From Neoechinorhynchus agilis (Eukaryota; Animalia; Acanthocephala), in assembly GCA_051530055.1 (NCBI GenBank), contig CM121343.1:4372389-4436388 (forward strand): a stretch of DNA of 64,000 bases. Direction: 5' to 3'. The position numbers and the translations under genes are program-made. The notes beneath the pieces were generated by a model that had not been told where the DNA came from, ran no database searches, and saw only the letters and a program-made list of their open reading frames with translations. This document shows, one piece after another, positions 6,409 through 62,867 of the stretch; the first letter of the stretch is position 1, and each line of letters starts with the position of its first letter.

Positions 6409-8202
6409 ATGGCAAGCCGATCATCTTCTCTGAGAGAAACAATAATTCCCGACCGGTGGCTTGACACACCGCCGATGTGTTCATCCTTGATCAATGGCAT
6501 GTTTCTCGTATTCAAGACTCCTCTTTCATCTGAGTATGATTCAAGTGTTTCTGAAGAAAAGCGGTTCACTCCTTCGGACGTGGTAGATCGGATGAACATT
6601 TTGACCGATGGAAAGAAAATTTCAGCAATTATAAGTCTTGTGAACACAAATCGGTATTATGACCCACGAGAGTTTAGCGATAATCATGGCATCCGTCACT
6701 TTAAGCTTCCATGTGTGGGACGAAACAAGTATCCAGAGACGAGTGTTAAGGAAAAATTTATAAGCATTTGTTCCGGAATTGGTGAAAGTTCGCCAGGTTC
6801 TGTTATAGGCGTCCATTGTACTCACGGTTACAATCGATCCGGATTCTTAGTGATCTGCTATTTGGTTGAACACAGCGGAATGAAGTTGGATGACGCCCTT
6901 CTAGTTTTTTCGAGAAGCCGCTCTAGGGGGATTTATAAGCGGGATTATATCCATGGTCTAAGATCGATGTATGCTTCTAATCCGCACAATACCTTAAGTA
7001 GAAAACGAGATGCAAACAATGAAGACGATATGGAGGATCGTGAAGCAAAGCGAAGAATTTCCACTTCGGCCAGTTATGATCATAAGGATATTACCTGCGA
7101 ATCGCCGCATGAATTTGCTGTTGATGTTCCGAATGTTTTCCCTCTAATGTGTCACCGAGATGAAGAAAAGATTGAGGAAATCAGACGAAACATAAAGCAA
7201 CTATGCCCCGAGACATTTGGTAATGGATTCATCGGTAGTCAACCAGTTTCAATGACTTTACGAAACATAATGAATCTCCAGCAATTGGAGTATCGCGTGA
7301 GCTGGAAAGCTGATGGTACAAGATTCCTGTGTCTTATAAAAAGTCAAAATGAAATTTATATGATCGACAGGAGAAATTGTATTTTCGCAATACATAACCT
7401 TTCATTTTTATCGTCGAAAAGTCCCACTGAACATCTTTCACAGACTTTGGTAGATGGAGAAATGGTGACTGATATCGTGGATGGAAAAGCAGTTCATAGA
7501 TATTTAATATACGACGTATTGGCATTCAATGGTCAACCAGCAGGACAAGAATTAGATTTTGATCAACGGATGGAATTGATTAGCCGCGAGATTGTGAATC
7601 CGCGATATCGCGCAATGCAACTCGGACTCATTGACCGACAACAAGAACCTTTCGGAGTTAGAAGAAAAGATTTCTGGCATGTTATGGCAGCTTCTAAAAT
7701 CCTGGGTGAAAAGTTTCAGCAACAACTTAGTCATGGAATTGACGGTCTCATTTTTCAACCTGTTCACATGCCCTATATATTCGGTACATGTTATGAGGTT
7801 CTAAAATGGAAACCTGAAGACATGAATTCTATAGATTTTAAGATGATCATTCCGAAATCAGTGATGGAGAAACGAGATATTGGTTCTGCTGGCTATTTGC
7901 ACGTTCGTAATCTCAAGAAACCATTCGCAAAGATCAGACTGACCGAAGAATTGTTTAACTGCAATGAAAAAATCGTCGAGTGTATCTGCGCCGATAATCG
8001 GTGGAAAATGCTGAGGATTAGATCCGATAAAACAACGGCCAATACACACCGGACGGCCTTAGCTATTGCGGAAAGTATCCAGAACCCGGTTACAAAGGAT
8101 CTCCTTTTGGAAGCAATCAAAGCGATTCGACCAGAACGTTTTGTTATTCGAAGCTTAAACGACTATCGGCAAGCAGACGGAAATGCGGCAGGCATGGAGT
8201 AA
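6409..8202 (+). CDS. RNGTT: Bifunctional mRNA capping enzyme (cysteine-type RNA triphosphatase + guanylyltransferase), intronless
   Basis: VHCTHGYNRSG P-loop; GTase motifs WKADG, DGEMV, YDVL, DGLIFQP, LKWKP. ATG at 6409 is preferred over the GTG at 6352. Confidence 0.95.
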   Translation: MASRSSSLRETIIPDRWLDTPPMCSSLINGMFLVFKTPLSSEYDSSVSEEKRFTPSDVVDRMNILTDGKKISAIISLVNTNRYYDPREFSDNHGIRHFKLPCVGRNKYPETSVKEKFISICSGIGESSPGSVIGVHCTHGYNRSGFLVICYLVEHSGMKLDDALLVFSRSRSRGIYKRDYIHGLRSMYASNPHNTLSRKRDANNEDDMEDREAKRRISTSASYDHKDITCESPHEFAVDVPNVFPLMCHRDEEKIEEIRRNIKQLCPETFGNGFIGSQPVSMTLRNIMNLQQLEYRVSWKADGTRFLCLIKSQNEIYMIDRRNCIFAIHNLSFLSSKSPTEHLSQTLVDGEMVTDIVDGKAVHRYLIYDVLAFNGQPAGQELDFDQRMELISREIVNPRYRAMQLGLIDRQQEPFGVRRKDFWHVMAASKILGEKFQQQLSHGIDGLIFQPVHMPYIFGTCYEVLKWKPEDMNSIDFKMIIPKSVMEKRDIGSAGYLHVRNLKKPFAKIRLTEELFNCNEKIVECICADNRWKMLRIRSDKTTANTHRTALAIAESIQNPVTKDLLLEAIKAIRPERFVIRSLNDYRQADGNAAGME

Positions 8203-10123: not shown

Positions 10124-11891
10124 TCACTCGCCAAGTCCACCGCCATCATCAATATCTCTAACGTCATCGATTTTCAAGATCATTCTAACGACCTGTGTAG
10201 CGAGCAAGATCTGTTGCTTCTTGCTGAAAAACCCTTCGACCACATAATTTTTAAGGAGATCAGCGTAGCCGAGTGCACAATCATCGTCAACGCAAATTCC
10301 AAGATTGTGATTTGACTGTTTGATTTGTTGAGCTTTGATGCTATAGACGTGGTCGATCGGAGCATATCCTAAATTTTCGGCCAAAGCCATTGGAATGCTT
10401 TCAAGTGCTTTCGCGAATCCTTTATAAGCATACTGCAAAGAAGATGCCAACTGATCCATTTTTCTCTCAACAGCGATTGCACACGACAACTCGCTGGCTC
10501 CACCGCCCGGAACCACTCTATTGTCGACAATTAAGTTTCTCACAACGCACATCGCATCATGGAGAGCTCGTTTGGCCTCTTCGACGATCATCTTATTGCC
10601 TCCTCTTAAGAAAACAGTAACCGCGTTTGAATTAGGACAGCCGGTGATTGCAATCATCCGCTCATCATTTGTGCCAAACGTGATTTCTTTTGCCGATTCG
10701 GCCCTTCCTAATTTCTCGGCAGTTAATTCCTGAAAGCGAGGAACTATCCGACCGCCGGTAGCAATGGCGATCAACTCTATCTCAGGACCACCAACCCATC
10801 TTACAGCCGGCAATTGATGACGATGAAGGAGATAATTCGCTTCGTCGTCAAATCCCCATTGACAAATGATCATATTAGCACCGGCGGATTTGCACTCTCT
10901 TATCATCTCTTCAAATTTATCCGTTTCATACCTATGAAGCTTTGAATATTCTTCCACATTCCCAATCTCCAATTTATGCTTTGTCTTAGGCTTCGGTGGC
11001 TCAAAGGGGCACGTTAGTATAGCCATTTTAGCGTTTTTGACTTCCTTTGGCATTTGTGGATGACTAAAATCTTTATCTAATGCAAAGAATCTCTTAAATT
11101 GTTGCTCCAAAGAGACTCGTTGAACATATCAAAATTCCTTTAATTAGCATACTTTCATCCAAAGACCCTCCAGTTTTGCCTTCCACTTTTATAAGATCGA
11201 AGTTCACATCGCGTCTTTCAAAATCAGCAACGCTCAAGACGGCATCGACGGCTATTTCAGCCAATTTTCTATGAACACGGGTAACAACTTTAGATCCAAG
11301 TGACGTCATAGCGCATTTAATCAAATAATCGCGATGCTCAGGGGTAATCAATGACGGCGACGACGACGATGTAGTACCCTTTTCGGCTACTCCAAACACA
11401 GCACCAATCTCTCTAGATACAAATCCATCCAAATGGTCTATAGCGGTTAGGGCTGCTTGTTCATAACCTTCGGCTATACGGGTCGCATGGAGTCCTTTAT
11501 CAAGTAATACCTCCGCTTCGTCCAATAAAGCACCAGCTAAAATAACAACACCGGTCGTTCCATCGCCTACTTCGTCATCCATCGACTTGGATAAATCAAC
11601 CATTAGCTTCGCAACTTCATTATCTAGATCCAATGAAGATAAAATAGTGGCACCGTCATTAGAAACAGCAACTTCACCATCGCAATTAACCAATATCTTG
11701 TCCATTCCTTTCGGTCCGAAACTAGTACGAACGATTTGAGCCACGGATCGCGCAGCCTTGATGTGAGCTCTGTGCGCCTGAAGACCAGTTAGACGCTGCC
11801 GCTTCTCCTGATCCTTGAGCACAATCACCGGACGTCCAGAGGAATCGAACGATAGAACGCCAACAGTCGCTACCGGACCACCCTGATGCAT
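10124..11891 (-). CDS. CCT5: T-complex protein 1 subunit epsilon; two exons, 49-nt interruption at 11077-11125
   Basis: [81 protein letters not shown]. Confidence 0.95.
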
Positions 11892-19318: not shown

Positions 19319-20964
19319 TTAAAAGACCCTGCGTTTAAAATATGATGTGCGAGTTTCCCATTTGCGAAAATTGCTCTTTCGATTCCATCTAGTCCATTTC
19401 TTCAGAATTTGTCGGCTTTTTTTCACATTGTGGACCTTGACGGGATCACTTTCATTGTCTACCTGAATAATAATGGCTTTTACAATTTTGAGAATATCGT
19501 TCTCGTCTCGCTTGAGTGTGGATCTGTAAATCAGTTCAGATGCCCATAATCGCAAATGAGGTTTTAGATAATGCATTTTGTTCACAACTACAATTTTTCG
19601 TGGTAAGCATGCGAACAAGTCAAGACAAATCGATTGATAATCTCGATAAATAAGTGGATAATACATACCTTCATTTAACAGCGTGCGTAAAATCTTTGCA
19701 AATTTATACTTAGAAAATAACTCGGACGATTTGAGATTTAATACAAGAGGACCTTTACCCGGTGCTAAACCTCAAACTACCAAAATTTGTATTTTGGCGT
19801 TCGACGGGAAGCTTCATTTATATGATACAGAGCTTCAGTCCTTTCTTCAACGGTTGAGCTTTGTAAAAGTTTCTTAACTAGAGAGGCCGTTCTCATTCTG
19901 ATGCATTGAAATTTAGGCCTAGAATATTTTTTCTTTATCGAAAATGCTTCTAATTTAGCTAGATCCTTTTTGGAGCAAAATGTTTTCACACATTCGGGTG
20001 CTCCACATCTACATGTCAATAATCCATCGATATTCTTTGCAGTAAACAAATAATTGTACGTTATCTCCTCGCCTTCTTCGATATCTCTATTTGCAAACAT
20101 TCCAATTCGATCGGTGCCATTGATTGTCCAAACATCTGCTCGAGAGTTTGGATCGCAACTGTGATTTATGAAACGACTAATATTGCCCTTAAGTGTGGCA
20201 TCCAACGTCAAAAAATCCCCGTATGTCATTCCATGAATTAGAGATCAGGTAATCATTTTAAAGGATCAATATACTATTAAAATATGTTTCCAGTTTAAAT
20301 GTTCAAAAACAATAAATCACCATTTATTGCCTTACCAAAAAAATTACGAATTACTAAGAGCGCCGTTTATATATATTCTTCAAAAGCACTAATCAGCCAA
20401 CATTATTCTATATCATTTAATGTTTTTAGAAGGCAATAATAAAGAAGACCGCGATTGAATATAATCAATCGTTAACTAATAAATTTTTTACGTAGATACG
20501 AGTTTGCTGGCCCAGGCTAACTGTTCTCCAATATAAGGATTGAAATTTGCTGGATCAATGGCGCGAAGAAGAGCGGATCTGCATTCAGCTTCTTTTTTTG
20601 TAACAACCTGTCCAACATATTCAACAATGAACTCATCGCATGATATTTTGTTCAAAGTTCGAACACCCCAACCCTTCATTTCGGTTTTAATAATTTCCAA
20701 CTTTACCTTGCTCCCTGTCTGCATCCTGCGATTAGTGCAGTATTTTCCGCAATCGCAATCATCAGGGCATTCAACCCCTATACTACGATTAATACATGAG
20801 ATACCACATCCAACCTTACGTCCCGATTCTATATCCTTGGTTATAGTACATGAACACTTGCCTGCGAATTCGCAATGCACTAAACCAATTCGTTTACTCA
20901 CAATCCATTCGTTTTCTTCGATGGGAATATAAACAGGAGGAATACTTTCTACAGAATAGTCCAT
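19319..20964 (-). CDS. SETD2: SETD2/Set2-like H3K36 methyltransferase (AWS-SET-postSET plus helical region); SET domain interrupted at 20230-20530; 3' structure uncertain
   Basis: CINR…ECP…CGKYCTNRR, KGWGVR, FIVEYVGQV, LDATLKGNISRFINHSCDPN, EEITYNY, CRCGAPEC; CLDLFACLP…LW resembles the post-SET helical region of SETD2. Confidence 0.65.
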
Positions 20965-22534
20965 TCGTGGGTTTTAATACATTCTCTCACAAATCAAATA
21001 GCTTCCGATGATCATATCGACCACAATACGTTTTGTACTCACCAAATCGTCGTTACTTGTTTACGTAATTTTAAATATTTATATAAGCCATTTTAAATGG
21101 ATCGATGCAAGATAGCTTAAATGGAACGTCGTTGTCGCCACATTTTGTCTAGATTCGGCGTGAAATATAATCAAGCGAGTGACATGGATAAAATGATCGC
21201 GGCAATCCACAAATACTAGTAATATTTGGAAACAAAATGATGGAACGGTGATCAATCCGAAAAGGCGGTTCGCTACTTTTCGTGCTTTTGTTAAAGAAAC
21301 GATAAAGCTTTTATGAATGTCCAGATAAAACATTCTCAAATTCATCATGGATATTTAATGTCATTGATCGCTACTACCAATCACTTTCTAATGTTTAGAA
21401 AACTCATTCAATCCTAGAAATTTTCAATCATATTTTTGTGATTCGGATAAGAGCGGTAAATATTTGAGTAGAATTTAGGAGAAAAGGTGTTTTGTTTGAA
21501 ATCAAGTTCATATTCCCATATATAACACATCATCCATTGAAGATTTACAACTTCCACAATTTGGAGGAGATATATAAATGTCAAACATTGCGATAGGTTA
21601 TTTTTAGGTTATGCCTTTGTTTTGCTAAAAAATGTTACTCAAAAATGGAAATCTTTATTGAAGTGAATTTACTGTCAATGCGTCTGAGCAATAGACCTTT
21701 CCAATTACAATACTAATTTTAATTCTCAAACTAATTGTCTTAGTATAAACATTTCACTTATAAAAATAGTCCAATTCGTTTTCAGCTAAATTCTGTTATA
21801 TTTTAGTATTTTCTGCTTCAAGACTTTGAATTTCTTTTTTTAAGTGGTACTATGTGAAAATATTATCCAGTACTTTTTCATCCATAGACGTGCTTTCAAA
21901 AGTAAATTTTTTATATTTTATGCTTTTGCTAACATTTAAAAATTGAACTTTTTCCAAAAAATAGGCGCTTAAATATTTTTATTTCCGAAATTCCTTCTAG
22001 TTTTCATTGTCGATATCTTCGTTTATTACAATAAAAAACAGCCGGTGTGAAGGAGATGGATTTAAAACAATGCGTGAAAGTTTGATTTGCTGCGTGGATT
22101 TACTGATTATTAACCTTTTAATTTACGAAATTCCATTCATCATTCAACCGAAGATCTCTGACTCATTAGTCCAGAGTTATCGTGACTTCCAAATCAATTA
22201 AATTTTTCTTTGTAAATTATCGCAATACGCTTTTGGTGTCAAATTTATGCTGAAATAAATCCGTATACACAATAAATCATTTAATTGATTTTAATTTTTC
22301 CTTAAAATACTTATACGGTGTTTTGTAATTTTTTTATAATACGTTTGTCTGTATCATCAAAGTTTTCATATTTAAAATTGAATTTTACGACACACACACA
22401 CACTGCCTCACACTCGCGGATTTAAAAGATTGTTGCCTGAAATGAATTGATTGAATTATTGATTGGGACTACCAAACGTTTGCAAAGTGAGAATGAATGT
22501 ATAATGGTAATGCTGCTTGTATTGTAATTGTACT

Positions 22535-25500
22535 TCACCACTTTCTAGACGAAGTTCCTGTCGCAATACCCATATCAATCACTGACGGTCGATGCGGGAC
22601 GCTGCTGTAGAGATCGGCGGTACACACTCTGCATCTAGACATTCTAGCTCTTCGCCTAGCGTCAGGCTTTAGAGTCTCTTCTCGAATATCAGTGGTGAAA
22701 TTAGTGTTCTCAGGTAGAGCTGCGACATAGAACGACATAAAATGCGGATAAAAGTTGCACTGTTGTGAACTTTTACAATGGAAGTACGGGGTTCCAATGT
22801 GTTGCTGCAAGCAAGAACCAGGAGATGAAAGTGTTTGTGCCCCTCCATGTCCACCATCAGCACTTGCAATGAAATGACTGAATCCATCCCATAGAGCCAT
22901 GTAACCACTTGGACATTGTGGTATTTGAGAAGTCTGACTGTGAACAGCGAATACCTTCGATCATTTGGTGAGTAAAATGCTCAAACATTTCCTCTGACTT
23001 ACCGGAGCCTTGTTTTCACAAACGACGCATCGACTCACATAAGGTTCAATCTCCATCGCGTTCCACGTACTCATGTCACTCCTCATCGGGTTGTTAGTAG
23101 CCAACCAATACGAGTAATCATTGCGTGTGGCATAATGACAGGTATTCTGAATGTCGCAAAATAAAAATGGCATTGCACTAAACTTAATCAAACAACTTCC
23201 GGCAGTGCCTAAATTACTTGAATCGTATATAATTTTATTATCTTACCACTCACCCAAGTCTTGTAAATGAGCGTATGAATCTCCTTGAATTCCCATAAAA
23301 GAATATCCTCTATAAATTTCTATCGCATCCAATTCACATTGTGGAATGTCTGTACTCTGGCTATGCCTTAATAATCGCAATTTTACAGAATATTGTTCCG
23401 TTTTTATGCCCCCCCTCTTTACCGTGCGTAAACAAATGATCCATCGAAAAATCCATCTGTGCCAGGTGATCCCGGCAATCCTCGAATACCCATCTGCCCC
23501 GTCGTACCGACTAACCCACGGGCACCCGCATCTCCAGGTATTCCTTTCATGCCCGCAGCTCCGGGCATACCATGGGTACCCGGTGGGCCAGATCTACCCT
23601 GACCTCCTGGCATTCCAGCATCACCTTCTTTTCCAATAGGGCCTTGAATGCCTATGTTAAGTTCGGCATTTATCGTGGAACATTTTTTTCATGTGAAAAT
23701 ACGAACCTCTATGACCAACATCGCCGCGATCGCCCTGATCTCCTGAAACCCCAACAATCAACTTCGCAACAGACGGAGGGCCCTGCAATCCTGGAGCGCC
23801 GGGTATTCCAACAGGTCCGGCCGAACCCTTGTTGCCTCTTTGTCCTTTGTTCCCAGGTGCCCCTAACATTCCTATAAGGCCCATATCACCTCGCATTCCT
23901 TTTATTCCTGGAAGTCCGCTAATCCCAGCTCGGCCAGAAATACCCATGTAGCCTGGACGTCCACGATGACCACTATCTCCCGGATAACCTTTAAGTCCGC
24001 GTGAACCAGATTTACCAACTAATCCAGGCTTTCCAGGTATACCAACGGGTCCCTTTTTGCCAGGAACACCAGGCATACCTGGCATACCGGGCCTTCCTGG
24101 TTCTCCCGCCTGTCCTTTGACGCTCGGTAACGCGATTCCAGGCAGCCCAGGCAAACCAGGCAATCCTACATCACCGATGTCTCCAACCAATCCTCTAATT
24201 CCAGGTTGGCCGCTATCACCGACATCTCCCGTTTCCCCTCTAGATCCCTGTCCACCTATAACGGATTTATGGAGAATATATTAAGCAAATAAAAATCAAA
24301 TAATCTATCTTACCAAAATCACCATGTTCTCCTGGTCGTCCAGTTGATCCTGCATCTCCACGTTGTCCCTTAATACCAGTATCTCCTCTGGAACCCTTGA
24401 AACCCATTAATCCTAGCAAGCCAACATCACCGGGCCTTCCAGGTGCACCCATTATACCAGGGATACCTACGATACTCATCGTCAGCCATATGTATAGGGT
24501 CCAAAGATCGCTTAACACTAACCTTGTCTTCCCGGAGCACCAAGCATTCCAGGCATGCCTATCATTCCAGTATCTCCACGTTCTCCTGATATTCCAGCCA
24601 ATCCAGTGTCGCCTGGAGAGCCACGCACACCCGGTTCACCAACTTGTCCATCACTTCCATGTCTGCCAACCAATCCCGGCTCGCCAGGCAATCCAACTCT
24701 ACCAGATTCACCTGCTGGTCCTTTTCTACCCTAAAATAGAACATGATCATAGCATAGTAAGCTCTATTCCTATACATACTGGAACACCCGGAACTCCTTT
24801 GGTACCAGCTTGTCCAGGTATGCCTGGTGGACCGATATCTCCGGGACGCCCAACTGCTCCACTTGAACCATGCTTTCCATTAAACCCAGGTTCGCCTTTT
24901 GAACCAGGAACACCTTGAGCTCCTGGTCTTCCGGGAGGACCGGGGTATCCGGGTTTCCCAGCAACACCCGGTGGGCCCGCTTGTCCTCTATCTCCTCTCG
25001 GTCCAGTTATTCCCTTGTATCCAAAGCCGATAACTCCAGGTATTCCAGGCAGGCCGTGCATTCCATCTCTGCCTCTACCACCTTGGGGTCCTGGAGGTCC
25101 ATCTGCTCCCCTATCACCGTGTAATCCCGGTAAACCGGGAGGGCCAGGTTCACCAGGAGATCCTCTATATCCCATCACACCTAAATCTCCCGGCATTCCT
25201 TTCGGGCCAGGCTTTCCATCCAAGGGGACCTCTGCACTGAGACCAGGTTCACCAACGTCTCCTTTTTGTCCAGCCATCCCCGGAATCCCATCACGTCCAG
25301 GTGCTCCAGGTGCTCCAGGGGTACCCATATCGCCAATTATACCCGGAGTACCAAGCATTCCAGGCGGACCAGGAAATCCTACATCACCCACATCACCACG
25401 CTGTCCCTTAATTCCTATAAAACCAATTTGGCCGTCGATTCCTCGTCCTCCTTTAAATCCAGGAACACCCGGCATTCCCGGCAACCCGGGTGTTCCAATT

Positions 25501-28500
25501 TGTCCTGTTGATCCCGGTGGACCAGGTAATCCATCGATTCCGGGTGGTCCTGTATCTCCACGAATTCCACGCACGGATGAACCAATTTCTCCCTTTTGTC
25601 CTTTCTGTCCACCTAATCCAGGATGACCGTGAAGCCCAGGACTTCCGCGCGGTCCAGGAAGACCAATGTCTCCTACTTCACCAGCTTCCCCGGCTGCACC
25701 AGGTGAACCAGGCAAACCCCTGATTCCTTGTAGACCTGGTACGCCAATTAGTCCTGGCACGTCCATAGCACTTGAGTCGCCCTTTTCTCCTTTGGCACCC
25801 TGCAATCCAGGCAAACCAGGTAAACCGGAGGTTCCCTTTGCTCCAGCAGGTCCAAGTCGACCTCGTAGACCGGGCTCACCGGGATATCCGCGATTTCCTG
25901 GTTCTCCACGTGGACCAGGCAACCCCATCAAACCAACATCACCGGGTTCGCCTTTCCGACCAGCAATACCTGGCAAACCATGTTTCCCCTCTCGTCCTGG
26001 CATTCCAGGCAAGCCAACGGAGCCTGAATCACCCTGCACTCCCTTTTTCCCATCCACGCCAGGGGTTGATAGTGGCATCGGTGCTGGCTCCCCGGGTTCA
26101 CCTGAATATTAGATGTAGCTTGTATATCTCATTAAGGCAATCCTATAAGATACCTGTTTGGCCTTTTCTTCCCCGCTTGCCCATTGGACCACGATCTCCA
26201 ACTTGACCGGCTGGCCCAGGCATTGGATACGGCGCCACTTCTCCTTCCTCACCAACAGCTCCTTGAGATCCAATTTGTCCAGCCGGGCCTGGAGGTCCGG
26301 TCTCCCCGGGAACACCCTTAATGTATGTAATTTCTTAACTAACTCCAAATTTGATGATTCTCTTACATCAGCACCAATTTCACCTTTTGCGCCATAGCTT
26401 CCGGGTCTCCCAGGAATTCCGAAATCACCAACTTCACCGAAAACTCCCATAGGACCGGGTTCGCCCGGCACACCTTTCATTCCTTTAACCCCGTCTAACG
26501 AAATGACTTCTCCGGCATCTCCTTTTTCGCCTGCTAATCCATCATTTCCCGAACGCCCATCGTAACCCTTTTAAACAAAAAGTTAAACAACTCACATGCG
26601 TAAAAAAGACTAACTTGTGTGCCTTTTGCACCACGCAATCCAACCGCTCCGACAAATCCTTGATCGCCTTTTAATCCGCGTAATCCCGGTGGACCTACGG
26701 GACCTGTACGTCCCGGATATCCAACGTCTCCAGCATCACCGCGCTTTCCGGGTGGCGGCCGCGGACAGTACGGGCATGGTCCAATGTCACCTATAAAACT
26801 TTTTGACTCCCTTCATATTGTTAATATGCGCACCTTTGATTCCTTGTGGTCCGGATACGCCTGGTAAGCCCGGTGCTCCAGGATATCCTCTTGGTCCGGG
26901 CATACCAAGGAAACCTTTCGGTCCCCGCCCAACGAATCCACCATGCGTGGCAGGAATTCCTACGTTTGCATATCATAGTGTATTCCACTAACTGCAAGTC
27001 CCTCTTTACCTGGCAATCCTTGATATCCAGGTTCACCCATGGGTCCCGGCATTCCTGTTGATCCAGGGCGTCCCTGTACTCCAGCAGTGCCCATTGGACC
27101 CTGAGAAGAATCTCCTTTAGCTCCTACAACTCCAGGCTCTCCTTTCCTTCCAATCCGACCAGCCGGGCCTGGTTCACCATACACACCAGGTAAACCTATA
27201 AAAATACCAATGTTGAAAGTTGATTTCCGGACGAAATAATCCTACCATCGTCGCCGCGAGAACCCTTTTCAGTATCGCCAGGGCTACCAGCTGGACCACT
27301 GACTCCCATTGGCCCAATATCTCCCTTTTCTCCTTTGTAACCTACATCGCCTGCGATACCAACAGGCCCTGGTTTTCCCATCCTTCCTGGAGCACCTTGC
27401 ATTCCCATCGGACCTTCCTGTCCAGTTACGGTGGTAACAGAAATCGTTCCTTGGACCTGCAATATCCATTGAGTTCAATGAGAATTATGCATCCCCAAAC
27501 AAACATTTTTTCCAGGAGGTCCTTGCAATCCAGCGTCTCCCTGATAACCCTTTATTCCTCTTCTCCCAGGAATGCCATGTAGACCAGACTGTCCGATTGG
27601 ACCTTCAGATCCAAGTTCGCCTTTTTTACCAGGAACCCCAGCTGCTCCTGGTTTTCCTCGTTTACCTATGGGACCTGGCGACCCAATGTCTCCCTTTTCT
27701 CCTTTTGACCCTTGTAATCCTCGACTTCCCTATATAGAAATCATTATCATGAGTACAGAGCATCTGTCGAAATAACCATATATCCTTGGTTTCCCATTGA
27801 ACCAACCGGACCTTGATCACCCGTGTCGCCCTTATATCCTTTGATCGTTGTTACACCTGAATGGGTTAGAGCTGCAGCAAGGTGAGTTCAGTATCATCTG
27901 CTGAGCGGCAAGGCAAATCATACGCGAATCGCTGATCGGTAACGTTCTCGCAAGCGATTTCTAATTTTTAGCTTTGACCAATTTTTATATATTAGTATCA
28001 ATTTAAAAGGCTTAAACATTGAGCACTAATTTTAAGGCTAACAACAGTAAGGCATCTAGTATTGACACTTACTACACTTCTCCGAGGACCAATCAGCGCA
28101 ATCTTAAAAATAGAACGTATGAAATTCATGTTGGCAAATTAGAGATTTGCAACGACCTCATGTTGTCACATTGTACAGAATTGGAAATCAATATACTCAC
28201 CGGACACTTCAGTTACACTCCTTCCAGGAGAACCTGGAAACCCAGGATCTCCGCGAATTCCCTTCATTCCCTTAATTGTCTCGCCTTGCTCGCCTTTCGT
28301 CCCACGGCTTCCTTTATAACCGGGTGGTCCCTCACAAATAGCAACAGTTTTACTCGTTCAACGTGAAAGATAAAATTGTGACTTACGATTGGTCCCATCG
28401 GGCCAGTGTCTCCTGGTATCCCTGGCTCTCCCGGATAACCACGTGAGCCCTAATTAAGTGCTGAACAGATGTCTTAGCCCAAAAGTGACTAACTGTTCCA

Positions 28501-29523: not shown

Positions 29524-31362
29524 TTGTCGTAGCGCTAAGCTGCTTGCCCAATCTTTAGATGAATGGCAGCAGTGTCTCTATGGGCAGTTGTGAGTTGGAA
29601 GAGATGATTGTAACTGTGAAAGGGCTCCACGCTTGTCTTATGTCTTTTCGAGTTCAGCGTACGGATAAGAAGAGGAAGGTATGTGTGTGTATGGTGGTAT
29701 TCGCTGGTAGGTTTATTGTCTCCTCTAAAATTCGGATGAGGAGCGCAACTGCAGAAGCGTGCAGTGTGTGTGTGAGCTCCAGGCCGGAAGGTTTGTCATC
29801 GGCATCAGAGGAAAATGATGTATTCAGAGAAAAGAACCAGACTGATGAGCGGATTTCTAGTAGTGCATGAGAGACAGGACGTATAGTCTGCTTCTAAGAG
29901 GTGCTTCCGGCGGCTATGAACATATCATCCCTTTGTTGGCGGTACGTTCAGTGCATAATGATTTGTGCGTTCCACGGTTTGATGGATTTTCGGTGCAGAA
30001 AATCCATAGTTAAGAAGGATGTAGCTATGCACATGCCTCTCCAGATCTCCCGTTTCACCACCACCACCGACATCAACTACCGTTAATAAGCCTTCATAGA
30101 AGCGCAAATCGGTTTTTCGTCGTCGCCGTCGTCGTTCCGGTTCAGCATTTTATTTAGCTGTATTCTGGGTGCATTTTGTGGAAGACGGGTGCGTTTCGGG
30201 AGGTCTCTATATGTGCATGATGGTGGTTTGTAACCGTTTACCAAAGCATGCTGGCAATATGTGCTGTCACAGCAGCCCCAGCAGCACCGCTACGGCGCAT
30301 AACCCCTGCCTTCTTTTATGTATATGTAGTCTCTAGAAGATCTTATATATAAAGAAGATGCCTGAAGTGATCCCCGTACGCAGCACCACTTAGTCCCATT
30401 GCCTCTTTTTTTCTGACTTTTCGTCATTTTCTCATCATCCAATTGTGGTGTCTTCTTATGTCAGCAGAGAACTTCGCCGATAGTGGCACCAAATCGGATG
30501 CCACGTACGGTGGAGATAGAAACATACCTCAACAAATGAAGCCTCGCTGTAGATCTACTACTTGTAATAATTATCTTCGTTCTGCTAGAACCACACCAAC
30601 GACGCCGCTTCTTCTGATTTGCCTGATAGTGCTACTCTTCCCCACATCAAATGCCACCACCACCACACAACAAACCCATTGTAAAGCTACCAAATAGTGC
30701 ACCATGGGATCATTCTTAGCCTTATATGCTCCCTATATTTGATTTTGTATATTTTAAACGGTGCATACTCGCTTGGTGTACCCACCACCCACACAACTTG
30801 CAAACTATATCCCACGAGTTTTAGTAGATCCCTACATTCATAGTCCAATTTTTCCTTACTCGTCCATTCTAAGTACCTACTGGACGCAGCAATTAGACAA
30901 AAGAAAATCGTTATAAGGGCATAAGCAGCAGAGATCGCGTTTATTCCTACTTTTAGATACAAAGTAGAGAGAAAGGAGAGGGGTATACTAACGGACAGCG
31001 GACACTGGCTAAGTTCAAATCCATCATATTCACAAGGACAGACCTGCGCGCGAGAGAGGGGTTTGCGTAATTTTCAAAAAAGGGCAAATTTCCTCCATCA
31101 ATTAGTAGAATACAATTGGAGATCTGTAAGTTTTGAGTGAAAGCCACCGTTGAACTTGTGTGTGCGTATATGTAACTAATTAAAATTTTAAAGGAATTAA
31201 TGGACTCAAGGAACGTCGTCGTATTTCCTGACGATGAACTGCGATTAAGTAATAGCAATTTTGCTTCCAAAACAAGAAGGCGGCGTAAGAAGCCTTTCAA
31301 TTCTTCAAATGGGTATGTAGTTGACTGAGCGGATGCACACACACATGGCAACCGTATTTGTG

Positions 31363-34300
31363 ATGTCTCGGTATTTTATCGGACGTCTAGTCGAATTGCT
31401 CGCTCGTCGCACAGTTAACGGTTTCCATGCTCATCGCTCTCTCTCACACACCGCCATTCTCTTGTTTGAAATCTTTAAAGTAGTTCACTTACTCTTGTCG
31501 TTTGTTAGATTAATATCGAAAAATCAAATATTACTTATCTACTTTGTTGCGATTTGGATTAACCAATGCCGGTGTCAACAAGTATGCTTTCTCTCTTTAT
31601 GCATTAGCGTCTCACAATTAATTTTACAGCATAATAGAGGTCCTCTCCCACCCGGCTACCATTATGTGAACAACGTCGCGAGTCCTTACGTACCGGATGC
31701 CACTTCCGACTGTGGAAACTGCCAGTATCCCTGTTTCTGCATTGCACAAAAAGGCGAAAGAGTACGTCGTACTCCCATATTCTCCTTCGTCTGTATATAT
31801 CCTTCTTTGCTTTAAAAGGGATACATGGGTCCACAAGGATCTGTAGGACCCATTGGCCCACCCGGTATTCCCGGGGCTGAAGGACCGGAAGGTCTGAAAG
31901 GTGATAAGGGAGATCGCGGTGTTCCTGGATTAATAGGACCAAGGGGTGAAAGGGTAAGCAAATTTGTCTTTTGTCTTTGTACGTGTATGGGTGACTAGGG
32001 TTCGAGTGGAATTCCTGGACACCCTGGTATTCCTGGCTTACCTGGCTTACCTGGAGAAACTGGACCTACAGGAATTCCTGGAAATGATGGCTGCAACGGA
32101 TCGACGGTAGTACCATCATGATGTTTCCCATTATAAAATCAACTCATGACCGTAGGGGCAACCCGGCATTTCTGGTCTACCTGGAAAGCCTGGTTTAGTC
32201 GGTGTCCCTGGCCTACCCGGAATAAAGGGAGCAAAAGGTGAACCAGCGTCGGCGCTTCCAGGAATGAAAGGCGAAAAGGTAAGTCGCTTAAATGAGATCA
32301 TTCTTACATTTCTGGTTTCTTAAAAGGGTGATTCCGGACTACAAGGAACACCTGGCGCCCAAGGAGCACCAGGAGAGTCCGGACTACCCGGACCAATCGG
32401 TCCACCTGGATTACAAGGTGTTATGGTAGGCCAGCACTTAATTTCAGAAATATCTACACTCGTGCATTGGTAAAGGGTCCTCTGGGCATGAAAGGTGACA
32501 AAGGTGACAAGGGAATGCCCGGTCTTGGACTTGAAGGACAAAAAGGTGAAAGGGGTCCACCAGGACCCTCTGGACCACCGGGAGAATTTATTGAACTTAC
32601 TGGAAATGTTACGATCGTTTCAATGCCTAGTATCATGGCATCTCGTGGCGACAAAGGAAATATGGGTCCTAAGGGTGAAGCAGGAATGCCTGGGCGTCCA
32701 GGCATGCCAGGCGAACATGGTTTGCCTGGTGAAAAGGGTGAAAAGGGACTTTTTGGATCCGCTGGACCAAGAGGATACCCCGGAATGCCCGGACCGTCAG
32801 GAATTCCAGGTCAGACCGGTGCAGTTGGATATCCAGGACGCCCTGGAAGAGACGGTGCGGCTGGACGGCCCGGTGAAATGGGCGAGAAAGGAGACCGCGG
32901 CCTTACTGGCCCTATAGGTGTGCCGGGGCAATGCATTCCTGTAAGTAAAATACTAACATCTCGCTGTGAATACGCTATGCTTAATGTACAGATTGATGGT
33001 CAACCTAGATATGGAAAACAAGGACCAATTGGTCCCCCCGGTCCACCGGGACCACCGGGTGTACCTGGGTTTGAGGGACCAAAGGGAAGCATGGGATTGA
33101 TGGGACCAAGAGGTGATACTGGAGATCAAGGACTTCCTGGCATGCCCGGTATACCGGGTATGTCTGGTAAAAAAGGTGAACGAGGTGAACCTGGTCGAAC
33201 AGGTATGAACAGTCTTTCAAACAAAAATCTAATGGTCAAGTTGTTCACTAGGTAATCGTGGAGCTGCTGGTTACCCAGGTAGCCCTGGACTACCTGGACC
33301 GAAGGGTGAACCTGGCCCAAAAGGAGAACCAGGATACGGAATCCCTGGAATGCAAGGGCCACCAGGAATGGACGGTTATCCCGGAGAAAGAGGTGTAAAG
33401 GGCGAGCGTGGCTTACCCGGCATGATGGGGGCGCCTGGCAATTCAAGTTTTGGACTTCCTGGACCGCAGGGCAACACTGGTCCTTCTGGTTTGCCTGGTT
33501 TGCCTGGTAGCGATGGTTTGCCAGGTCCTCGTGGTCCAAAGGGAGAAACGGGTTAGTTAGTTAGGAAGTGATAAATGTTTACATTGTATATAGGACCCGT
33601 GGGAATATGTGGTTGCACCGACGGTATCAAAGGAGAGAAAGGAGAAGCAGGTGCTCCAGGAACACTGGGTCTTCCTGGCTCACGTGGAGTCATGGGGGAC
33701 AAGGGTGATAGAGGAGATATCGGATTACCTGGACCACCAGGCGCGGTCGGTGAGCCGGGAGATGTTGGACGGTCTGGTACACCCGGACGACACGGCGAAA
33801 AGGGTTCAAAAGGAGAACCGGCATATGCTGAAGGCCTTCAAGGAGTTCCTGGGCAAAAAGGTGATCCCGGGCTACCGGGCATGAAGGGAGAAAAAGGTCG
33901 ATCTGGTTTAAGTGGACGAGATGGAATACCTGGCGTTTCTGGAATCAAGGGCGAAATGGGCCGTAAAGGAGAACCGGGTTACCCTGGCATGCCAGGTCCT
34001 CCTGGACAGACTGGACCTACTGGATTGCGTGGACCATCTGGAAGGTCACTACCCGGTGTATCCGGCGAGAAAGGCTTACCTGGCCCAGTTGGACCTCATG
34101 GACCATTTGGACTCAAAGGAGAAAAGGGCGAACCCGGTATGCTCTCGCCGGCTGTTTTATTGCATTTACTTTAGCGTTATAAAACATAGGTCGGCAGTAC
34201 GCTGGTCCACTGATTGGTACACCTGGCTTAAGAGGCGATAAAGGAAACACGGGATTACCCGGTCCCATGGGACCACCGGGTCACCCAGGAAATGACGGAA

Positions 34301-37300
34301 TGCCTGGGGTTCCTGGATTGGCTGGACAAAAGGGAGAACGTGGACCTGCAGGACAACCCGGTTTGATTGGGCCCATAGGTATTTTGCAACGAATACAAAA
34401 TGTAAATTATTTTTACATCCTTTGTAAATAGGAATCACCGGCGCTCGAGGAGAAATCGGCCAACCCGGGTTGCCCGGTTTTGTTGGTCAACCAGGACCAA
34501 AAGGTGATGATGGTTTGCCTGGTATGCACGGTTTGAAGGGATCAAAAGGTGAATCTGGAATCGTTTTACCTGGTTCAAGAGGACCTCCTGGACCTAGAGG
34601 CCCACAGGGGGAAACTGGATTACCTGGGCTCCCAGGAGCACCGGGTTCTAAAGGATTTATTGGACGCCCGGGACCGAAAGGAGAACGTGGGGTTCCTGGA
34701 CAGAGTGGTATCCCAGGATTACCTGGTCTTAAAGGAGACAAAGGAGCACAAGGATTTCCAGGGCAGAAAGGCGATATGGGAATGCCTGGTTTGCCCGGAA
34801 AACCTGGGCAAATGGGACCAACCGGAATGCCTGGACCGCAAGGCAATGTGGGATCTCCGGGAGAGCCTGGTCGCATGGGTCAAAGGGGAGATGATGGCTT
34901 GCCTGGTCCTATCGGAATGCCAGGACTCAAGGGAGACAAGGGTCTCAGAGGTCTGACGGGAAGTCCCGGTATGCCTGGTTTGCAAGGTGCCAAAGGTCAA
35001 CACGGATTGCCCGGCTTGCCTGGTTTGAAAGGCAGAGATGGTACGTTTGGCGTGCATGGGATGAAGGGAGCGAAGGGCGAATCTGGAAGGCCTGGAGAGG
35101 CATGTGCAAGATGTCAAGATGGAGTACGAGGACCGAAAGGCGAACCAGGAATGACAGGAATGCATGGTGCAAAAGGCGAGCCAGGTCTAATGGGTATACC
35201 TGGCCCTAAAGGTAATAGAGGACCATCTGGTATGATGGGTCCAATAGGAGCCCTTGGGCCCCCTGGAAAGGATGGAATGCCAGGCCTACCTGGACCAAAA
35301 GGCAAAGACGGAGTGGGACCAACAGGAGAAAAGGGCTACCCAGGATTACCGGGCAGGCAAGGCGCTCCAGGTCTTATAGGTATGGTAGGACCCCAAGGCC
35401 TTTCAGGAACACCAGGTCCACCTGGTCCCAAGGGACAGCAGGTAAACATCAAGTTTATATGATAAAAGCTGAATTAGCATCAAAACATTCAGGGAATGGC
35501 TGGTCTACCAGGATTACCCGGCGAACCGGGAAAACAAGGACCAATGGGGCCGTCAGGTTTAATGGGTCCTGCAGGTGTAACCGGACAAAAAGGAGAAGCA
35601 GGTTTACCTGGTTTTCCTGGCGTACCTGGTTTTCCGGGACCAAAAGGATCAAGCGGTTTACCAGGCCCCCCTGGTCGAGATGGAATAAGAGGACTTCCCG
35701 GAGTTCCTGGTGAAAAGGGAATACAGGGATTGCCAGGTACAAGCCGAAATATTAAGTTTATGGCGTAAATACTCAATTGCTTTAGGAGTGCGAGGTGTCA
35801 AAGGTAATATTGGTATAGCAGGTCCTCCTGGAATGCCGGGACAACAGGGACAAGCGGGGCCTGTCGGTGCTCCAGGACTACCAGGATTGAAAGGTATGAC
35901 TTGGAAATATAGATCATTAAATTTTGACATATCTTTTAAATTAGGTCAACGCGGTAAGGATGGATTACCTGGAATGACTGGTCCAAAAGGTGATCGGGGT
36001 TTCAGTGGTGAGAAGGGAGAAACTGGACTGGCTGGAATGCCTGGATTGAAAGGAATGCCCGGCATAGCTATACCAGGACCCAAGGGAGATAAGGGCCGTC
36101 AAGGTTTTGATGGTCTGCATGGAGAAAAGGGTGATAAAGGTAAAACTTTGCCAATGGCCGAAATATTTCACATATGACTATAATAATTGTGTTATAGGCC
36201 AGAGGGGATACCCTGGAACACCCGGAGCAAAGGGTGATGATTGTAGATTCGCGAGTCAAGGACAGAAAGGAGAACCTGGTCTGCAAGGTCAATCCGGCGC
36301 GCCTGGATTGCCAGGAATGATTGGACCAATAGGCGATGCTGGCCTTCCAGGGGCTGTGGGCCTACCAGGGCTGCAAGGAGAACGAGGTGAAAAGGGAAAT
36401 ATTGGACCGATGGGTGTTGCTGGAGAGCGCGGCCCAGCAGGACCACCGGGACCACCAGGATTGATGGGTCAACCTGGGCCGAAAGGTGATAGTGGTTTAC
36501 CTGGACCGATTGGTCCGCGTGGATTGGATGGCTCGAAAGGTGACCGTGGTGAAAGGGGCGATGCAGGTTTTCCTGGTGTTCCAGGATTACCCGGACCAAC
36601 TGGGTTGTGTGAATCTGGACCATCTGTTAAAGGAGACAAAGGTGCTAAAGGTGAAAGAGGATTCCCGGGTCCTCCTGGTGTCGCTGGACCTCCTGGTATG
36701 CACGGCAGTCCTGGATTGCCCGGTGAAATTGGTGAACCGGGTTCACCTGGTAAACCAGGTTTGGTAGGTCGAATTGGAGAAAAAGGAGAGCCTGGATTGG
36801 CAGGTATGACGGGTTCCCCTGGTTTGCCTGGTCAGCCTGGTCCTCCGGGTTTTCCTGGTTCACCTGGAGCCAGTCTGCAGCGTACTGGGTTTATGTTGAC
36901 TCGTCATTCTCAATCGACGACCGTTCCTTTCTGCCCACCGGGAACAATAAAAGTATGGGATGGATACAGTCTTTTGATGATTCATGCAAATGAACATGGA
37001 TATGAGCAAGATTTGGGATCTGCCGGATCATGTATGCAGAAGTTTTCCCCATTGCCATACATGCGTTGTGATCAGACAAACGTTTGCTACTACGGTCAAA
37101 CCAACGATGTGACCTATTATTTGTCTACAAATGAGCAAATGCCAATGATGCCAGTAGAAAATGAATTGATTAGACCATATATCAGTCGCTGTGCCGTTTG
37201 TGAGACCCCTACCAATGTTATGTCTTTCCACAGCATGTCAATGCAAGTGCCTAGTTGTCCAGGTGGATGGGAAGCATTATGGCAAGGCTACAGTTTTGTA

Positions 37301-37659
37301 ATGGTAAGTTGTTTGTCAAAACTCAATTGAGTTTAATGCTGGTTTTTGTTTAGCATTTGGGTCGTGGTAGTCAAGGCGGAGGTCAGTCTCTATCAAGCGC
37401 AGGAAGTTGCCTTGAAGATTTCAGAACCACTCCATTTATCGAATGTTCCGGTACAACTGGACAGTGCATGTTTTACGCCAATAAGATAAGCTTTTGGTTA
37501 ACTACAGTCGATGAACGTGAGCAGTGGAACCGGCCTCAGCAGCATACACTCAAAGCAGGACAACATCGAAACAAAGTTAGTCGTTGTGTTGTATGCATGA
37601 AACGACAGGACCGCCCCGATGTTCAATATGGTTCTCCATATCGACGAAAAAAGCTATAA
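31363..37659 (+). CDS. COL4A2: Collagen type IV alpha2-like chain, multi-exon, divergently transcribed from the alpha1-like gene
   Basis: Spliced signal peptide [19 protein letters not shown]…; [14 protein letters not shown]; Gly-X-Y exons with GT-AG introns; NC1 [45 protein letters not shown] (alpha2-type Cys spacing). Confidence 0.9.
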
Positions 37660-55498: not shown

Positions 55499-58141
55499 AT
55501 GAATTGTTCCAATTATAAGGAATGTCCTTTCTCTTTCATCACATATAATGCCTCTAGGGCTTCTAGTCTTCCTAATTTTCTTACTCCTTGTGTAGTTGAT
55601 AACTATGTTAACATGCTGTGTTTTCAAGAAACCGGCTTTTCTAAAATGCTTCTCTTCGATAATTATGATTCTCATGTTCTTCTCCCTTGCTCCACATCAA
55701 CCAATCAGCACATTGGATTTTCTGGAGGACTTCAAACATTTATTCTTAAATCTCACTCTTCTAAAATTTTATTTCAAACTAAAAATATTTCTTTTGCAAT
55801 GCAAATTATTTCTTTTAATAATCCCTTATATGGAACCTCATCCCTTTTCTCTCCTACTCTTATCCTTTGCAACTTGTATATTCAACCCAGACACGTGGGT
55901 ATATTTACTAAATCTTTTATGCATATCCTCCGTTACTGGAATCCTGACTTTATCGTAGGCGACTTCAATAGTAATTTTTTAAATGCTTTTAGGCCCTTTT
56001 TTAAGTTTCACAATTTTTTGCTCCCCAAATTTCCTTTTCATAATTTTAAATCTAATAGACATACCTTCTTGGATGGTGCAATTATTAAAAAGTCAATTCC
56101 TATTTTATTTTATCCTGCTTCCCAACTTCAGTCACAGAGATTGTTAGGGCATGACTTTATCCTTTTTAAATCTAATGGCATCGATCTTAAGGACACTTTC
56201 GTTTTTAATCCTAAAAGCTTTTCAAAATTTAATAATGATCTCCTTTCTTATATGAACTCTTCCACTTCATCCTCCTTATCTGACTTTAACAATGCCATTT
56301 TATCCTCTGTACATAAAAATTTAATTACTAAGTCTGTGATCAAGCGACCTCCTGTTTGTCATGAAGCCAACATATTTTATAAAAATGCTGTTATAGCTGA
56401 CTTGTATGGTAACGCTCCCCTTAAAAACTTATTTATGAAAAAATTTTACACAGCTAAGTTTTATCATCAAGTTTCGTTGGACAAAAAGAAGCTGATCTCT
56501 CTTAAGTCCTTTGGTAAGGACTTTTGGTCCTGTATTTTGAAAAGAAGACCGGTCTGTTGGAAGGCAAAAGCATCTAACTGGATAGGGTCTATATCTTATC
56601 CTGCAGTAATTGAGTCTATTTTGATGGCACATACTCTTAGTGCATGTTCTTCTCCTCCACTTCCCATCTTTAATAAAAAGTCCTTTTCGTGGAATTTTGA
56701 AGTTGAAGTTTTTCTGAAGGCCTGTAAATCTAACCCCTCTAAAGCGTATAATATAAATGGCACTTCACCCATAATTTTTAGTTCTATTTCTGATAAGGTA
56801 AAATCTATCTATTTTAGTAGATTTCGTTTATCGAAAATTGATTTTAATGATCTACTTAACATAAATATTGTTACGAAAATTTTTATTCCCAAAACGAAAG
56901 GACGTATATTTAACGCATCCCACATCAGAGTAATTTCCATACAGAACCCAATCGTCTCTTGCTTAGAAAGAGCGGTGAACGGGAAACTGTATGACTTTTT
57001 AGTATGTAGAAAGCTAATCCCCGACTTTTTCCATGGCTTCATTAGAGGTAAAGGTGTCACATCGCTTTTATCCTCTCTTAATTCTATGAATGAAGCTATT
57101 AATGTACAAAAACTTCTCATTCAGCTGGATATTAATAAGGCTTTTGATGCCTTGGATCGTGGCTTTCTTTATGAGGCTTTAGTTAATCTTAAAGTTCCTC
57201 TTAATCTTATCTACAAAACCAACTATCTTATGGAATCCAAGTCCTTTTACTATGAGGTGGACCCTTCTCACACTAAATTTTTCTCTAGATATGGTGTTCC
57301 TCAAGGATCTCCACTCTCGCCCACCTTATTTTTAATTGCCCTTATATATATTTTCAAAAATTTAAAGAAATCATCTTCCATATTTCCTTTAGTTTATGCG
57401 GATGATATATTCTTATTTTGTAAAGCTAGAACATCTTCTATTCTAACGAATAATATAGCCAATTTTATGCAATCTTTGTCGTCGGAACTTAGGAAAGCCA
57501 ATTTAGTTACGAACAATAACAAAACTTTCTTTATTCCACTGACTAAAACTTTGGCTTCGAGGAAGCTTCTAATTAATGAATTATCTTCTAATTTCAATTT
57601 CCCTAATATCAATTTTAGATCGCATTCCAAGATTTTAGGTGTTGATTTCCCCTGTAAAAATCATAGAATTTTTATAAACTCTTCCTTTAAAAGTCTTCTG
57701 ACAAAAACAGATATTTTTATCAAAAGAGCGAAAAGGTTATCAATTTCCCCACCTTTTATTTCTAAAGTGTTAAAAATATTTCTAGGGGGTTCAATATGCC
57801 TTTTCGCACGAAGCCGGCCCCCAGAAAACAGACTATCATTTTATCTTACTATGCTGAAGAAGCTTAGCAGTATTCTTATTAAAAATAATATTGATACGGA
57901 ACCCCTTTTTTCCTTTTTAACAAGAATTTTTTTGTCTAAAATTTGGTTTTATTCTTATTATTATTCTAGCTGTAAATATTTTAATTACAACTCCTCAATT
58001 CTTAGAATCTTTTTCAATAAACCATCCAGTTTTTTACCCATTAATCAAACTAATATACTTAACAGGAATGAGGTAAGTGATTTTCTCATGTTATTCTCTT
58101 TTTTACAGGATCAGGACAAGAAAAGGATTATTATTACTTAA
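55499..58141 (+). mobile_element. Intact non-LTR retrotransposon ORF (APE endonuclease + reverse transcriptase), 880 aa
   Basis: APE motifs TYNA, CFQET, GGL, VGDFN, FLD, GHD; RT motifs IPK, FHGF, LDINKAFD, GVPQGSPLSP, YADD, KILG; short (TTA)n at the stop. Confidence 0.92.
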
Positions 58142-61079: not shown

Positions 61080-62867
61080 TTAAAGATCAGTCTTTAAGTA
61101 AGGTCCGTTTGCCATTTTCCTGAACTTGTTAACATGAGCAATACTGTTCGATGTACGTCCGAATCCATTGAAGAGAGAAACAACGTTCCATCTATTAAGA
61201 TAAGAAGGTACGCTCATTCCTTGTACGGCATCAGTCGTATTCGAAAACAATATATTAAATGCTGTTCCTAAAGCTTGCGTTTGGAGTCGTCCCCACATCC
61301 GGCACTTGTCGCAGCCAACACAATCCATTATTTTGGTAATGTTAACAAACTTTGTACTGAACAAACTTTTAAGATTATCGGCGTTTTCATCGGCGAACAT
61401 TCGCTTTTCATCGAAAGAGCATTGAATCGAAGAAAGAAGATCCACTAACTCAATGACGGCTTGTCTGGTGTTATTACTCTCTTCTTCATTTCCAGCATAA
61501 AACCTAAGACGCTTAAGGTCGTCTTTAGCTTTTAATATCGCTCTCTGCTCAATCATGTAAAGAAAATATAGATTTTTCAAGTATTGAGCACCTTGACCTT
61601 GAGTAGCGCTTGTGTCAAATCTTCGCATAAACTCCGGTAAATTATATCCCCAGTGATCAGAAAGTATGTTACCCGGAAAGTAAAACTCGGCACAGAGATG
61701 GACATTGATGCTCGTGTGAAGACCTGAAATGACCCGGTGAAACACTTGGTTTTCATAACAAAGCTGTGTATGGTTATCAGGTGACGGATAAGCAGTGATA
61801 TGGTCCTTCCAAAAACAGTTTTCACTATAAATCGCTCGCCATATCCGCCAAGCTGATTCACCTCGATATCCTGTACCATCGGCATTTCAATGGGTTGTAA
61901 TGATCTTATCCATGGAGCAAAAAAAATAATATTTGATGTTTCGTCCTGTACGCGTGAGATTTGTCCAGAATTTACCTTTTCAAGATTCTTAACATGTCTC
62001 ACAAGTACAGGACGAAATATTAAATCATAGAGGATTGTGGTCGCCTCTTCTTCAGTCATTGTAAAAATTAATCTAATCGACAATAAAATATCTTTTAATC
62101 GGACAAGGGAAACGATTATCATCACCACAATTCAACATTAAATTTTCTTTTCGATTTCGCCTGCCTTAGCAAAACAATTTCAAACTCTGCTCCATTGTAA
62201 TCGCATTTTGCTAACCGAAATATTCTTTTACTATGAGCAAAAAAATTCGTTTATATTTTTCGACAGCATTTGCACTGATAATCAAAAATTAGTTATTGAC
62301 AGATAAAACGATGGAAATGCCAATGTTAAATCGCTCAGGATTGCGTCTCAAATCAACAAACACTGAATTCGGATCATCTGCGTCATCAGGTAGCCTACAA
62401 AATAAAGCAGCGTTGTCGTTCTCAGTCCAATTCCGAACCGCTTCCACCGATTCAGCCAATTTCGTATCCACGTGACCGAGCGGATCATTAGACTCACATT
62501 CGCTATGAGTATACTGATGTTTTGCTTCATCATAAGTACGAATCCCATCAGGAAGCTCGGCTACGTCGCATGGAAACACCGCACAACCACGGCCAACACA
62601 ATAATCGGCGTCGTGCCAGAATTCACATTCTTTGTTCAATACGGTCTTGTAGTATTTAAAATATGGACGGTTCAATAAATCTTTCAATCGGTCATTCACT
62701 TGGACGTGGAGGAGATCAATCATTTCAATTTTACAATTAGATCCGAGGACATCGTCTTTCAGTTCACTAAATACGGATGTATCCATCAATACTACATTTA
62801 GGCACGAAAACAAAAGAAAAAATAAGATCGGACGTCCTTTAGCGTAAAATGTAGTGGCGTCTTCCAT
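61080..62867 (-). CDS. ERO1: ER oxidoreductin 1, interrupted by a 451-bp insertion at 61876-62326
   Basis: YFKYYK..L.KEC.FW, C…CAV.PC, VDLRRNPERF | TGYRGESAWRIWRAIYSENCF, FHRVISGLHTSIN, MDCVGCDKCRMWGRLQT. Confidence 0.9.
61876..62326. mobile_element. Non-autonomous TIR element (MITE) with TA target duplication inside ERO1
   Basis: Ends ccatcggcatttcaat and atggaaatgccaatgt (13/16 complementary); TA at 61874-61875 and 62327-62328. Confidence 0.8.

Follow-up and report, generated by a model that had tools for sequence, protein, structure and literature searches.

ERO1 is needed for the formation of disulfide bonds in proteins, and in the acanthocephalan Neoechinorhynchus agilis the gene encoding it is interrupted in the middle of a conserved motif by a short stretch of non-coding DNA. 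The gene lies on the minus strand of contig CM121343.1 (GCA_051530055.1), with RPB1 adjoining it head to head. The locus raises the question of whether, and by what route, such a gene can still give rise to its enzyme. A preliminary description had left two answers standing, namely that the insertion is very recent or that it is tolerated through an unusual mechanism. We have analysed the gene together with the whole 64-kb stretch of the contig around it (the window, in whose numbering all positions below are given), and the indirect evidence that has emerged leans towards the unusual mechanism.

ERO1 is divided into two intact halves

The two coding parts on either side of the break (Table 1) are both readily recognised as ERO1. 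The N-terminal half (62867..62331, 179 aa) matches positions 1-111 of the Pfam ERO1 family with an E value of 1e-18 and aligns to residues 43-184 of human ERO1A (3ahq). The C-terminal half (61871..61083, 263 aa, beginning GYRGESAWRIW) matches Pfam positions 114-353 (E 2e-76), aligns to residues 187-460 of the human protein and has kept the CVGCDKC active site. Because the N-terminal half stops at human residue 184 and the C-terminal half begins at residue 187, exactly two residues are absent between them. The earlier claim that both halves are otherwise free of stops is borne out by these intact reading frames and their alignments. Reading through the break is a different matter, and here too the preliminary description, which had a stop following soon after, was right: the first ORF (62867..62289) runs through ...DLRRNPERF into the insert, continues as NIGISIVLSVNN and is then closed by TAA.

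The ORF calls on record for this region in the public assembly (61577-62867) consist of an ERO1 stump (192 aa) and a spurious ORF in the wrong frame (181 aa), and the true C-terminal half is uncalled. We also considered whether the insert might be bypassed during translation, or the two halves made as separate polypeptides, and rejected both, given that the C-terminal half lacks a signal peptide and shows no start codon close to where it begins. No second ERO1 of N. agilis appeared among the protein matches listed for searches with either half.

Table 1. Positions of the ERO1 parts, of the insert and its components, and of the other interruptions discussed in the text (window numbering)
Feature	Position	Strand	Description
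ERO1 5' coding part	62329..62867	-	ATG at 62867; signal-peptide-like N-terminus; shuttle-cysteine region; ends with ...NPER and the TT of a Phe codon
ERO1 3' coding part	61080..61873	-	begins CA, then GGA TAT (GY...); core of the FAD domain; CVGCDKC active site; stop at 61082-61080
TA, first target copy	62327..62328	-	after exact excision supplies third base of Phe and first base of Thr
Non-coding element	61876..62326	-	451 bp, between the two TAs
TA, second target copy	61874..61875	-	from sequence and excision test
5' terminal arm, sense RNA	62314..62328	-	UAACAUUGGCAUUUC, TA included; inverted repeat that closes the minimum-energy fold
3' terminal arm, sense RNA	61874..61888	-	GAAAUGCCGAUGGUA, TA included
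Internal hairpin of the element	61931..62025		95 nt: 41-nt arms, 80% complementary, 13-nt loop
CCT5 insert	11078..11128	-	47-nt hairpin, TA-flanked
SETD2-like insert	20230..20530	-	297 nt inside the SET domain, TGGA repeat at its bounds
Ordinary GT-AG intron, EST1/SMG-like gene	15800-15931	+	132 nt, GG|GTAACC...TTGAG|G, no terminal stem

The insert has the anatomy of a small DNA transposon

On the sense strand the break reads ...CGA TT[TA]ACATTGGCATTTCC...GAAATGCCGATGG[TA]CA GGA TAT..., and the preliminary description of a 451-bp element with terminal inverted repeats and a duplicated TA, splitting the gene within NPERF-TGY at 61874-62328, proved exact to the base. The two 15-nt arms, in which the TAs are included, form 13 Watson-Crick pairs out of 15 and one further G-U pair. 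When all 127,090 position pairs of the same spacing in the window were compared on both strands, the ERO1 element was the only one to reach 13 or more matches. As RNA, the duplex of the two ends has an energy of -18.3 kcal/mol against -5.9 +/- 2.3 for shuffled sequences, and none of 2000 shuffles equalled it. A terminal inverted repeat of this quality lies far outside chance expectation. When the whole insert is folded, the terminal stem closes both the minimum-energy and the centroid structures (z = -4.6). The stem's only pair outside the Watson-Crick rules, U-G in the sense RNA, can form in that orientation alone.

Between its ends the element is without a long ORF, and its G+C content is 32.5% with the TAs included, compared with approximately 40% in the flanks. 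It holds a separate internal hairpin, possibly a nested foldback, for which Rfam returned weak generic matches to miRNA hairpins alone, far below gathering scores; for the element itself no Rfam family was found at gathering scores. Neither another copy of the element nor a matching terminus is present within the 64-kb window. Of the features expected of a TA-targeting MITE, terminal inverted repeats, duplication of a TA target, small size, absence of coding sequence and AT-richness are present in the ERO1 element, and its likeness to the Tc1/mariner (Stowaway-like) MITEs extends to the shortness of the repeats and a length below 500 bp. When an ordinary MITE inserts into an exon, the result is a knockout.

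Base-exact removal restores the ERO1 motif

Excision of the element together with one TA (453 nt) gives a stop-free ERO1 of 444 aa, which carries RFTGY, as the preliminary description had expected of precise removal, and reads NPERFTGYRGESAW. Three such exact excisions are equivalent, with ends TA..GG, AA..GT or AC..TA, and the exact join 62329|61873 reads ...GAGCGATTTACAGGATAT....

We compared this outcome with those of conventional splicing by enumerating all GT-AG, GC-AG and AT-AC pairs within approximately 100 nt of the junction that leave the frame open. Among these pairs near the junction, no in-frame GT-AG pair preserves the motif, in agreement with the earlier remark that an in-phase GT donor is missing. 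The weak GC donor that had been pointed out at the same time (G|GCATTT, with the acceptor TACAG|GA) does form an in-frame GC-AG pair at 62320/61871, and its product is indeed RFNIGY. An AT-AC intron of the U12 type was rejected: the in-frame pairs start with ATTTAA, ATTGGC and similar sequences, without a consensus of the ATATCC type, and every one of them removes or changes residues of the motif.

The relatives of the enzyme leave little latitude at this point. In all 231 ERO1 relatives fetched, exactly two residues, [FYH][TS], stand between NxE[RK] and GY, and the second of these is Thr in 230 of them. Since the spacing is the same in all 231, that of RFNIGY is seen in no relative. The closest relative listed (P0001, 66% identical) is uninterrupted at this point and reads NPERFTGYKGESAW. 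Before the insertion the site thus read TTT ACA, with its TA as the target, and base-exact removal alone yields an enzyme that conforms to the family.

The position of the insert is specific to the acanthocephalan lineage

To see whether the interruption is an inherited intron, we examined gene structures in a rotifer and an annelid. In the rotifer Adineta vaga the only intron of ERO1 lies at residue 388, and there is none at the motif; the ERO1 of the annelid Dimorphilus has introns on both sides of the exon bearing the motif and none that splits it. Because neither gene has an intron there, the position of the insert represents a gain in the acanthocephalan lineage, like that of transposon-born introns already known, and these two structures rule out an inherited ancestral intron.

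Other genes of the window carry comparable inserts

The ERO1 insert is not the only interruption of a conserved gene in the window. CCT5 is broken by a far shorter insert (Table 1), which has a stop in frame and forms an internal stem of 9 bp. Aligned to human CCT5, the part before the insert ends at residue 228 and the part after it begins at residue 230, and exact TA-to-TA removal joins ...GILI to DKDFSHPQ. The Asp at this junction is invariant in 96 of 96 relatives, and the GT-AG pair that is available would replace it with Tyr. CCT5 is indispensable in the eukaryotes in which it has been studied, and the insert must therefore somehow be removed. In the public assembly the calls for CCT5, like those for ERO1, are fragmentary (265 aa and 195 aa).

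The third case lies in a SETD2-like gene, where the minimum-energy and centroid folds of the insert are each closed by a terminal stem and where neither an in-frame GT-AG nor an in-frame GC-AG pair was found for the insert. Since it lies in a variable loop, this junction is less exact. The ORF of this gene ends at a TAG (19771-19779, minus strand), and an open frame of 150 codons begins 8 nt further on in another frame; either another short interruption or the true end of the gene may account for this.

Conventional splicing coexists with these odd inserts, as the ordinary GT-AG intron of an EST1/SMG-like gene (Table 1) attests. The genes seen in the window hold few introns: the mRNA capping enzyme (597 aa, 6409-8202) is one uninterrupted ORF, RPB1 (63781 onward) is called as one product of 1870 residues, and ERO1 and CCT5 have one interruption each. 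Taken together, conserved genes here appear to contain a mixture of conventional introns and stem-closed, repeat-bounded interruptions that do not follow the GT-AG rule. A scan of the entire window for TA-flanked, stem-closed deletions that join ORFs was too permissive, and TA was not enriched in it relative to other dinucleotides.

The window also contains an 880-aa ORF (55499-58141, plus strand) with an RVT_1 reverse-transcriptase domain, which is likely to belong to a non-LTR retrotransposon. Its G+C-rich part holds two collagen genes placed head to head, at approximately 22500-27500 on the minus strand and 31300-37330 on the plus strand, the latter ending in type IV C4 (NC1) domains.

Searches for transcripts and for earlier reports

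We looked for a same-species transcript protein spanning the ERO1 junction, using as queries each of the two halves and also the opening 60 aa of the C-terminal half, this last against all cluster representatives, and found none. The matches listed in the ERO1 protein searches were the 192-aa piece from the N. agilis genome itself and foreign orthologs of at most 66% identity. For CCT5 the matches listed were foreign orthologs only, with no same-species protein among them. When the capping enzyme, the N-terminal part of CCT5 and the ERO1 pieces were looked up by exact sequence, each came back solely as a singleton from GCA_051530055.1, and metagenome scans with the ERO1 exon ends gave no match.

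The paper describing the N. agilis genome reports an assembly from pooled worms and takes its low BUSCO completeness as a sign of gene loss (PMC12690905). It makes no mention of introns, nor does its supplement mention ERO1 (PMC12690905), and in our literature search we came across no publication on non-canonical introns in acanthocephalans.

Discussion

We consider it just on the probable side that the ERO1 insert is a MITE-derived non-canonical intron, which may be cut exactly from the ERO1 RNA. In the mechanism that we propose, a small non-autonomous DNA transposon of the MITE type would have entered the TA of TTT-ACA, within the codons for RFTGY, in the acanthocephalan lineage. The insert would now leave the pre-mRNA as a non-canonical intron, and the gene would have stayed functional. 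The two ends of the insert would pair into the terminal stem and in doing so bring the duplicated TAs together, upon which one TA and the 451 nt would be cut out exactly, giving ...NPERFTGYRG.... That this removal takes place at the level of RNA is something we infer, as is its agent, which could be a relaxed spliceosome or another enzyme.

Several observations speak for an intron. Both halves of ERO1 are intact, and only exact removal gives the motif of the family. In addition, CCT5 and the SETD2-like gene carry inserts of a similar kind, which break the frame, are closed by a stem and are bounded by short direct repeats, and for these GT-AG splicing either cannot work or would destroy an invariant residue. 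It is implausible that three conserved genes, CCT5 among them, should have been knocked out simultaneously within 64 kb. On the other side, it is generally known that ERO1 is dispensable in some animals, its loss being tolerated in mouse and worm. A segregating allele could moreover have been captured, given that pooled worms were assembled (PMC12690905).

These last two points lead to the alternative that has to be weighed most carefully, although we hold it to be unlikely: that an ordinary MITE has recently inserted and produced an ERO1 allele of no or strongly reduced function, which is polymorphic or heterozygous among the worms and entered the assembly from the pool. Worms may tolerate such an allele, with ERO1 function coming from other oxidases or from the second allele. 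The anatomy of the insertion is that of the textbook, with a TA duplication, terminal inverted repeats and a target that removal restores exactly, and the intactness of both gene halves is what one would expect of a young event. That a pool of individuals was assembled (PMC12690905) agrees with this, as does the absence of an ERO1 transcript protein from the species in our searches, which is likewise the case for the other window genes searched. However, the inverted repeats are imperfect (13/15) and the element has a separate internal hairpin, neither of which suggests a very young copy, and the lack of a second copy in 64 kb is unlike what a young family in a burst would leave. The majority allele is what a pooled assembly usually reports. 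Furthermore, CCT5 and the SETD2-like gene are similarly interrupted, and these interruptions cannot all be null alleles.

It is improbable, in our estimation, that the ordinary spliceosome removes the insert by joining 62321|61870 through the GC donor ATTG|GCATTT (62320) and the acceptor GGTACAG|GA (61871), so as to produce RFNIGY. This pair is the sole one with spliceosomal dinucleotides that preserves the frame and keeps most of the motif, its TACAG acceptor is good and is preceded by a run of T approximately 55 nt upstream, and ordinary introns are present in the N. agilis genome. Yet its product would replace the Thr found in 230/231 relatives and add a residue, giving a spacing found in 0/231; the context of the donor is unlike the spliceosomal donor consensus; and GC-AG splicing would leave unexplained that the family motif is perfectly restored when the insert is removed exactly from TA to TA.

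Least probable of all, and in our judgement very improbable, is an exact excision at the level of DNA, by a transposase or as a programmed somatic event in the manner of the TA-bounded sequences that ciliates eliminate, after which expressing cells would carry a restored ERO1: the TA boundaries and inverted repeats are features that a cut-and-paste transposase recognises, and exact excision alone restores the gene, but cut-and-paste excision normally leaves footprints, the ends TAACATTG and TACCATCG do not fit the ciliate TAYAGYNR consensus, and to our knowledge programmed DNA elimination has not been described in acanthocephalans.

If the intron reading is adopted, the insert can be placed beside several known systems. 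The MITE-derived introns of the tunicate Fritillaria borealis resemble the ERO1 and CCT5 inserts in having lineage-specific positions, terminal inverted repeats and target-site duplications and in being without GT-AG ends. The likeness extends to the host, which is in both cases an animal, and the window genes of N. agilis have few introns. In the accounts of Fritillaria given in PMC11282704 (for Henriet et al. 2019) and PMC13326754, its introns are mostly AG-AC or AG-AT and follow an exonic TAC. The ERO1 insert differs in that its ends are TA..GG, AA..GT or AC..TA, none of which is AG-AC or AG-AT, with a TA duplication. It differs also in the phylum of its host, Acanthocephala.

The nonconventional introns of euglenids share with the ERO1 insert non-canonical borders, direct repeats at the junction and a terminal complementarity that joins the ends, and both they and the N. 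agilis inserts coexist with conventional introns. In euglenids the stem is typically formed by positions +4..+6 and -8..-6 (CAG/CTG) (PMC11282704, PMC12501133, PMC11170887), whereas the 15-bp stem of the ERO1 insert begins at the duplicated TA itself and its host is an animal. Introner elements and invasive intronic elements are likewise DNA transposons with terminal inverted repeats and target duplications that become introns in coding sequence. Hosts named for them are Micromonas, Aureococcus and dinoflagellates such as Amoebophrya and Polarella (Huff 2016; Farhat 2021, PMC7789003; Roy 2023; all through PMC11282704). They occur, however, in many near-identical copies and mostly create GT/GC-AG sites or bring them along, while the ERO1 insert has no second copy in 64 kb and no canonical site that fits.

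Transposon-derived introns with terminal inverted repeats, target duplications and non-canonical borders are thus an already known class, for which Acanthocephala would be a new host phylum. In its sequence, the ERO1 insert presents features of this class: borders other than GT-AG, inverted repeats combined with a direct repeat within a conserved gene that is otherwise intact, a lineage-specific position, and the occurrence of similar cases (CCT5 and the SETD2-like gene) beside ordinary introns. We put forward more tentatively, as a possibility that falls a little short of probable, that the ERO1 insert is a clear-cut case, 'caught in the act', of a TA-duplicating MITE working as an intron in a non-tunicate animal, whose own inverted repeats and TA may define an excision that is guided by structure, independent of splice signals and restorative of the frame.

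Should the insert turn out to be a plain knockout allele, the finding would be an ordinary one. If exact removal from RNA takes place, a non-canonical intron of a bilaterian parasite would be tied directly to a recognisable DNA transposon, and the insert would offer a clean substrate for the study of excision without splice signals, with 451 nt, a 15-bp closing stem and RFTGY as an unambiguous read-out in the protein. If the intron reading is true, the insertion of a MITE into essential genes of this animal would be harmless. Gene models broken by such inserts would then be wrongly counted as losses, which may add to the low BUSCO completeness and might account for some of the core genes (40-45% of metazoan BUSCO orthologs) that are missing from the published N. 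agilis assemblies.
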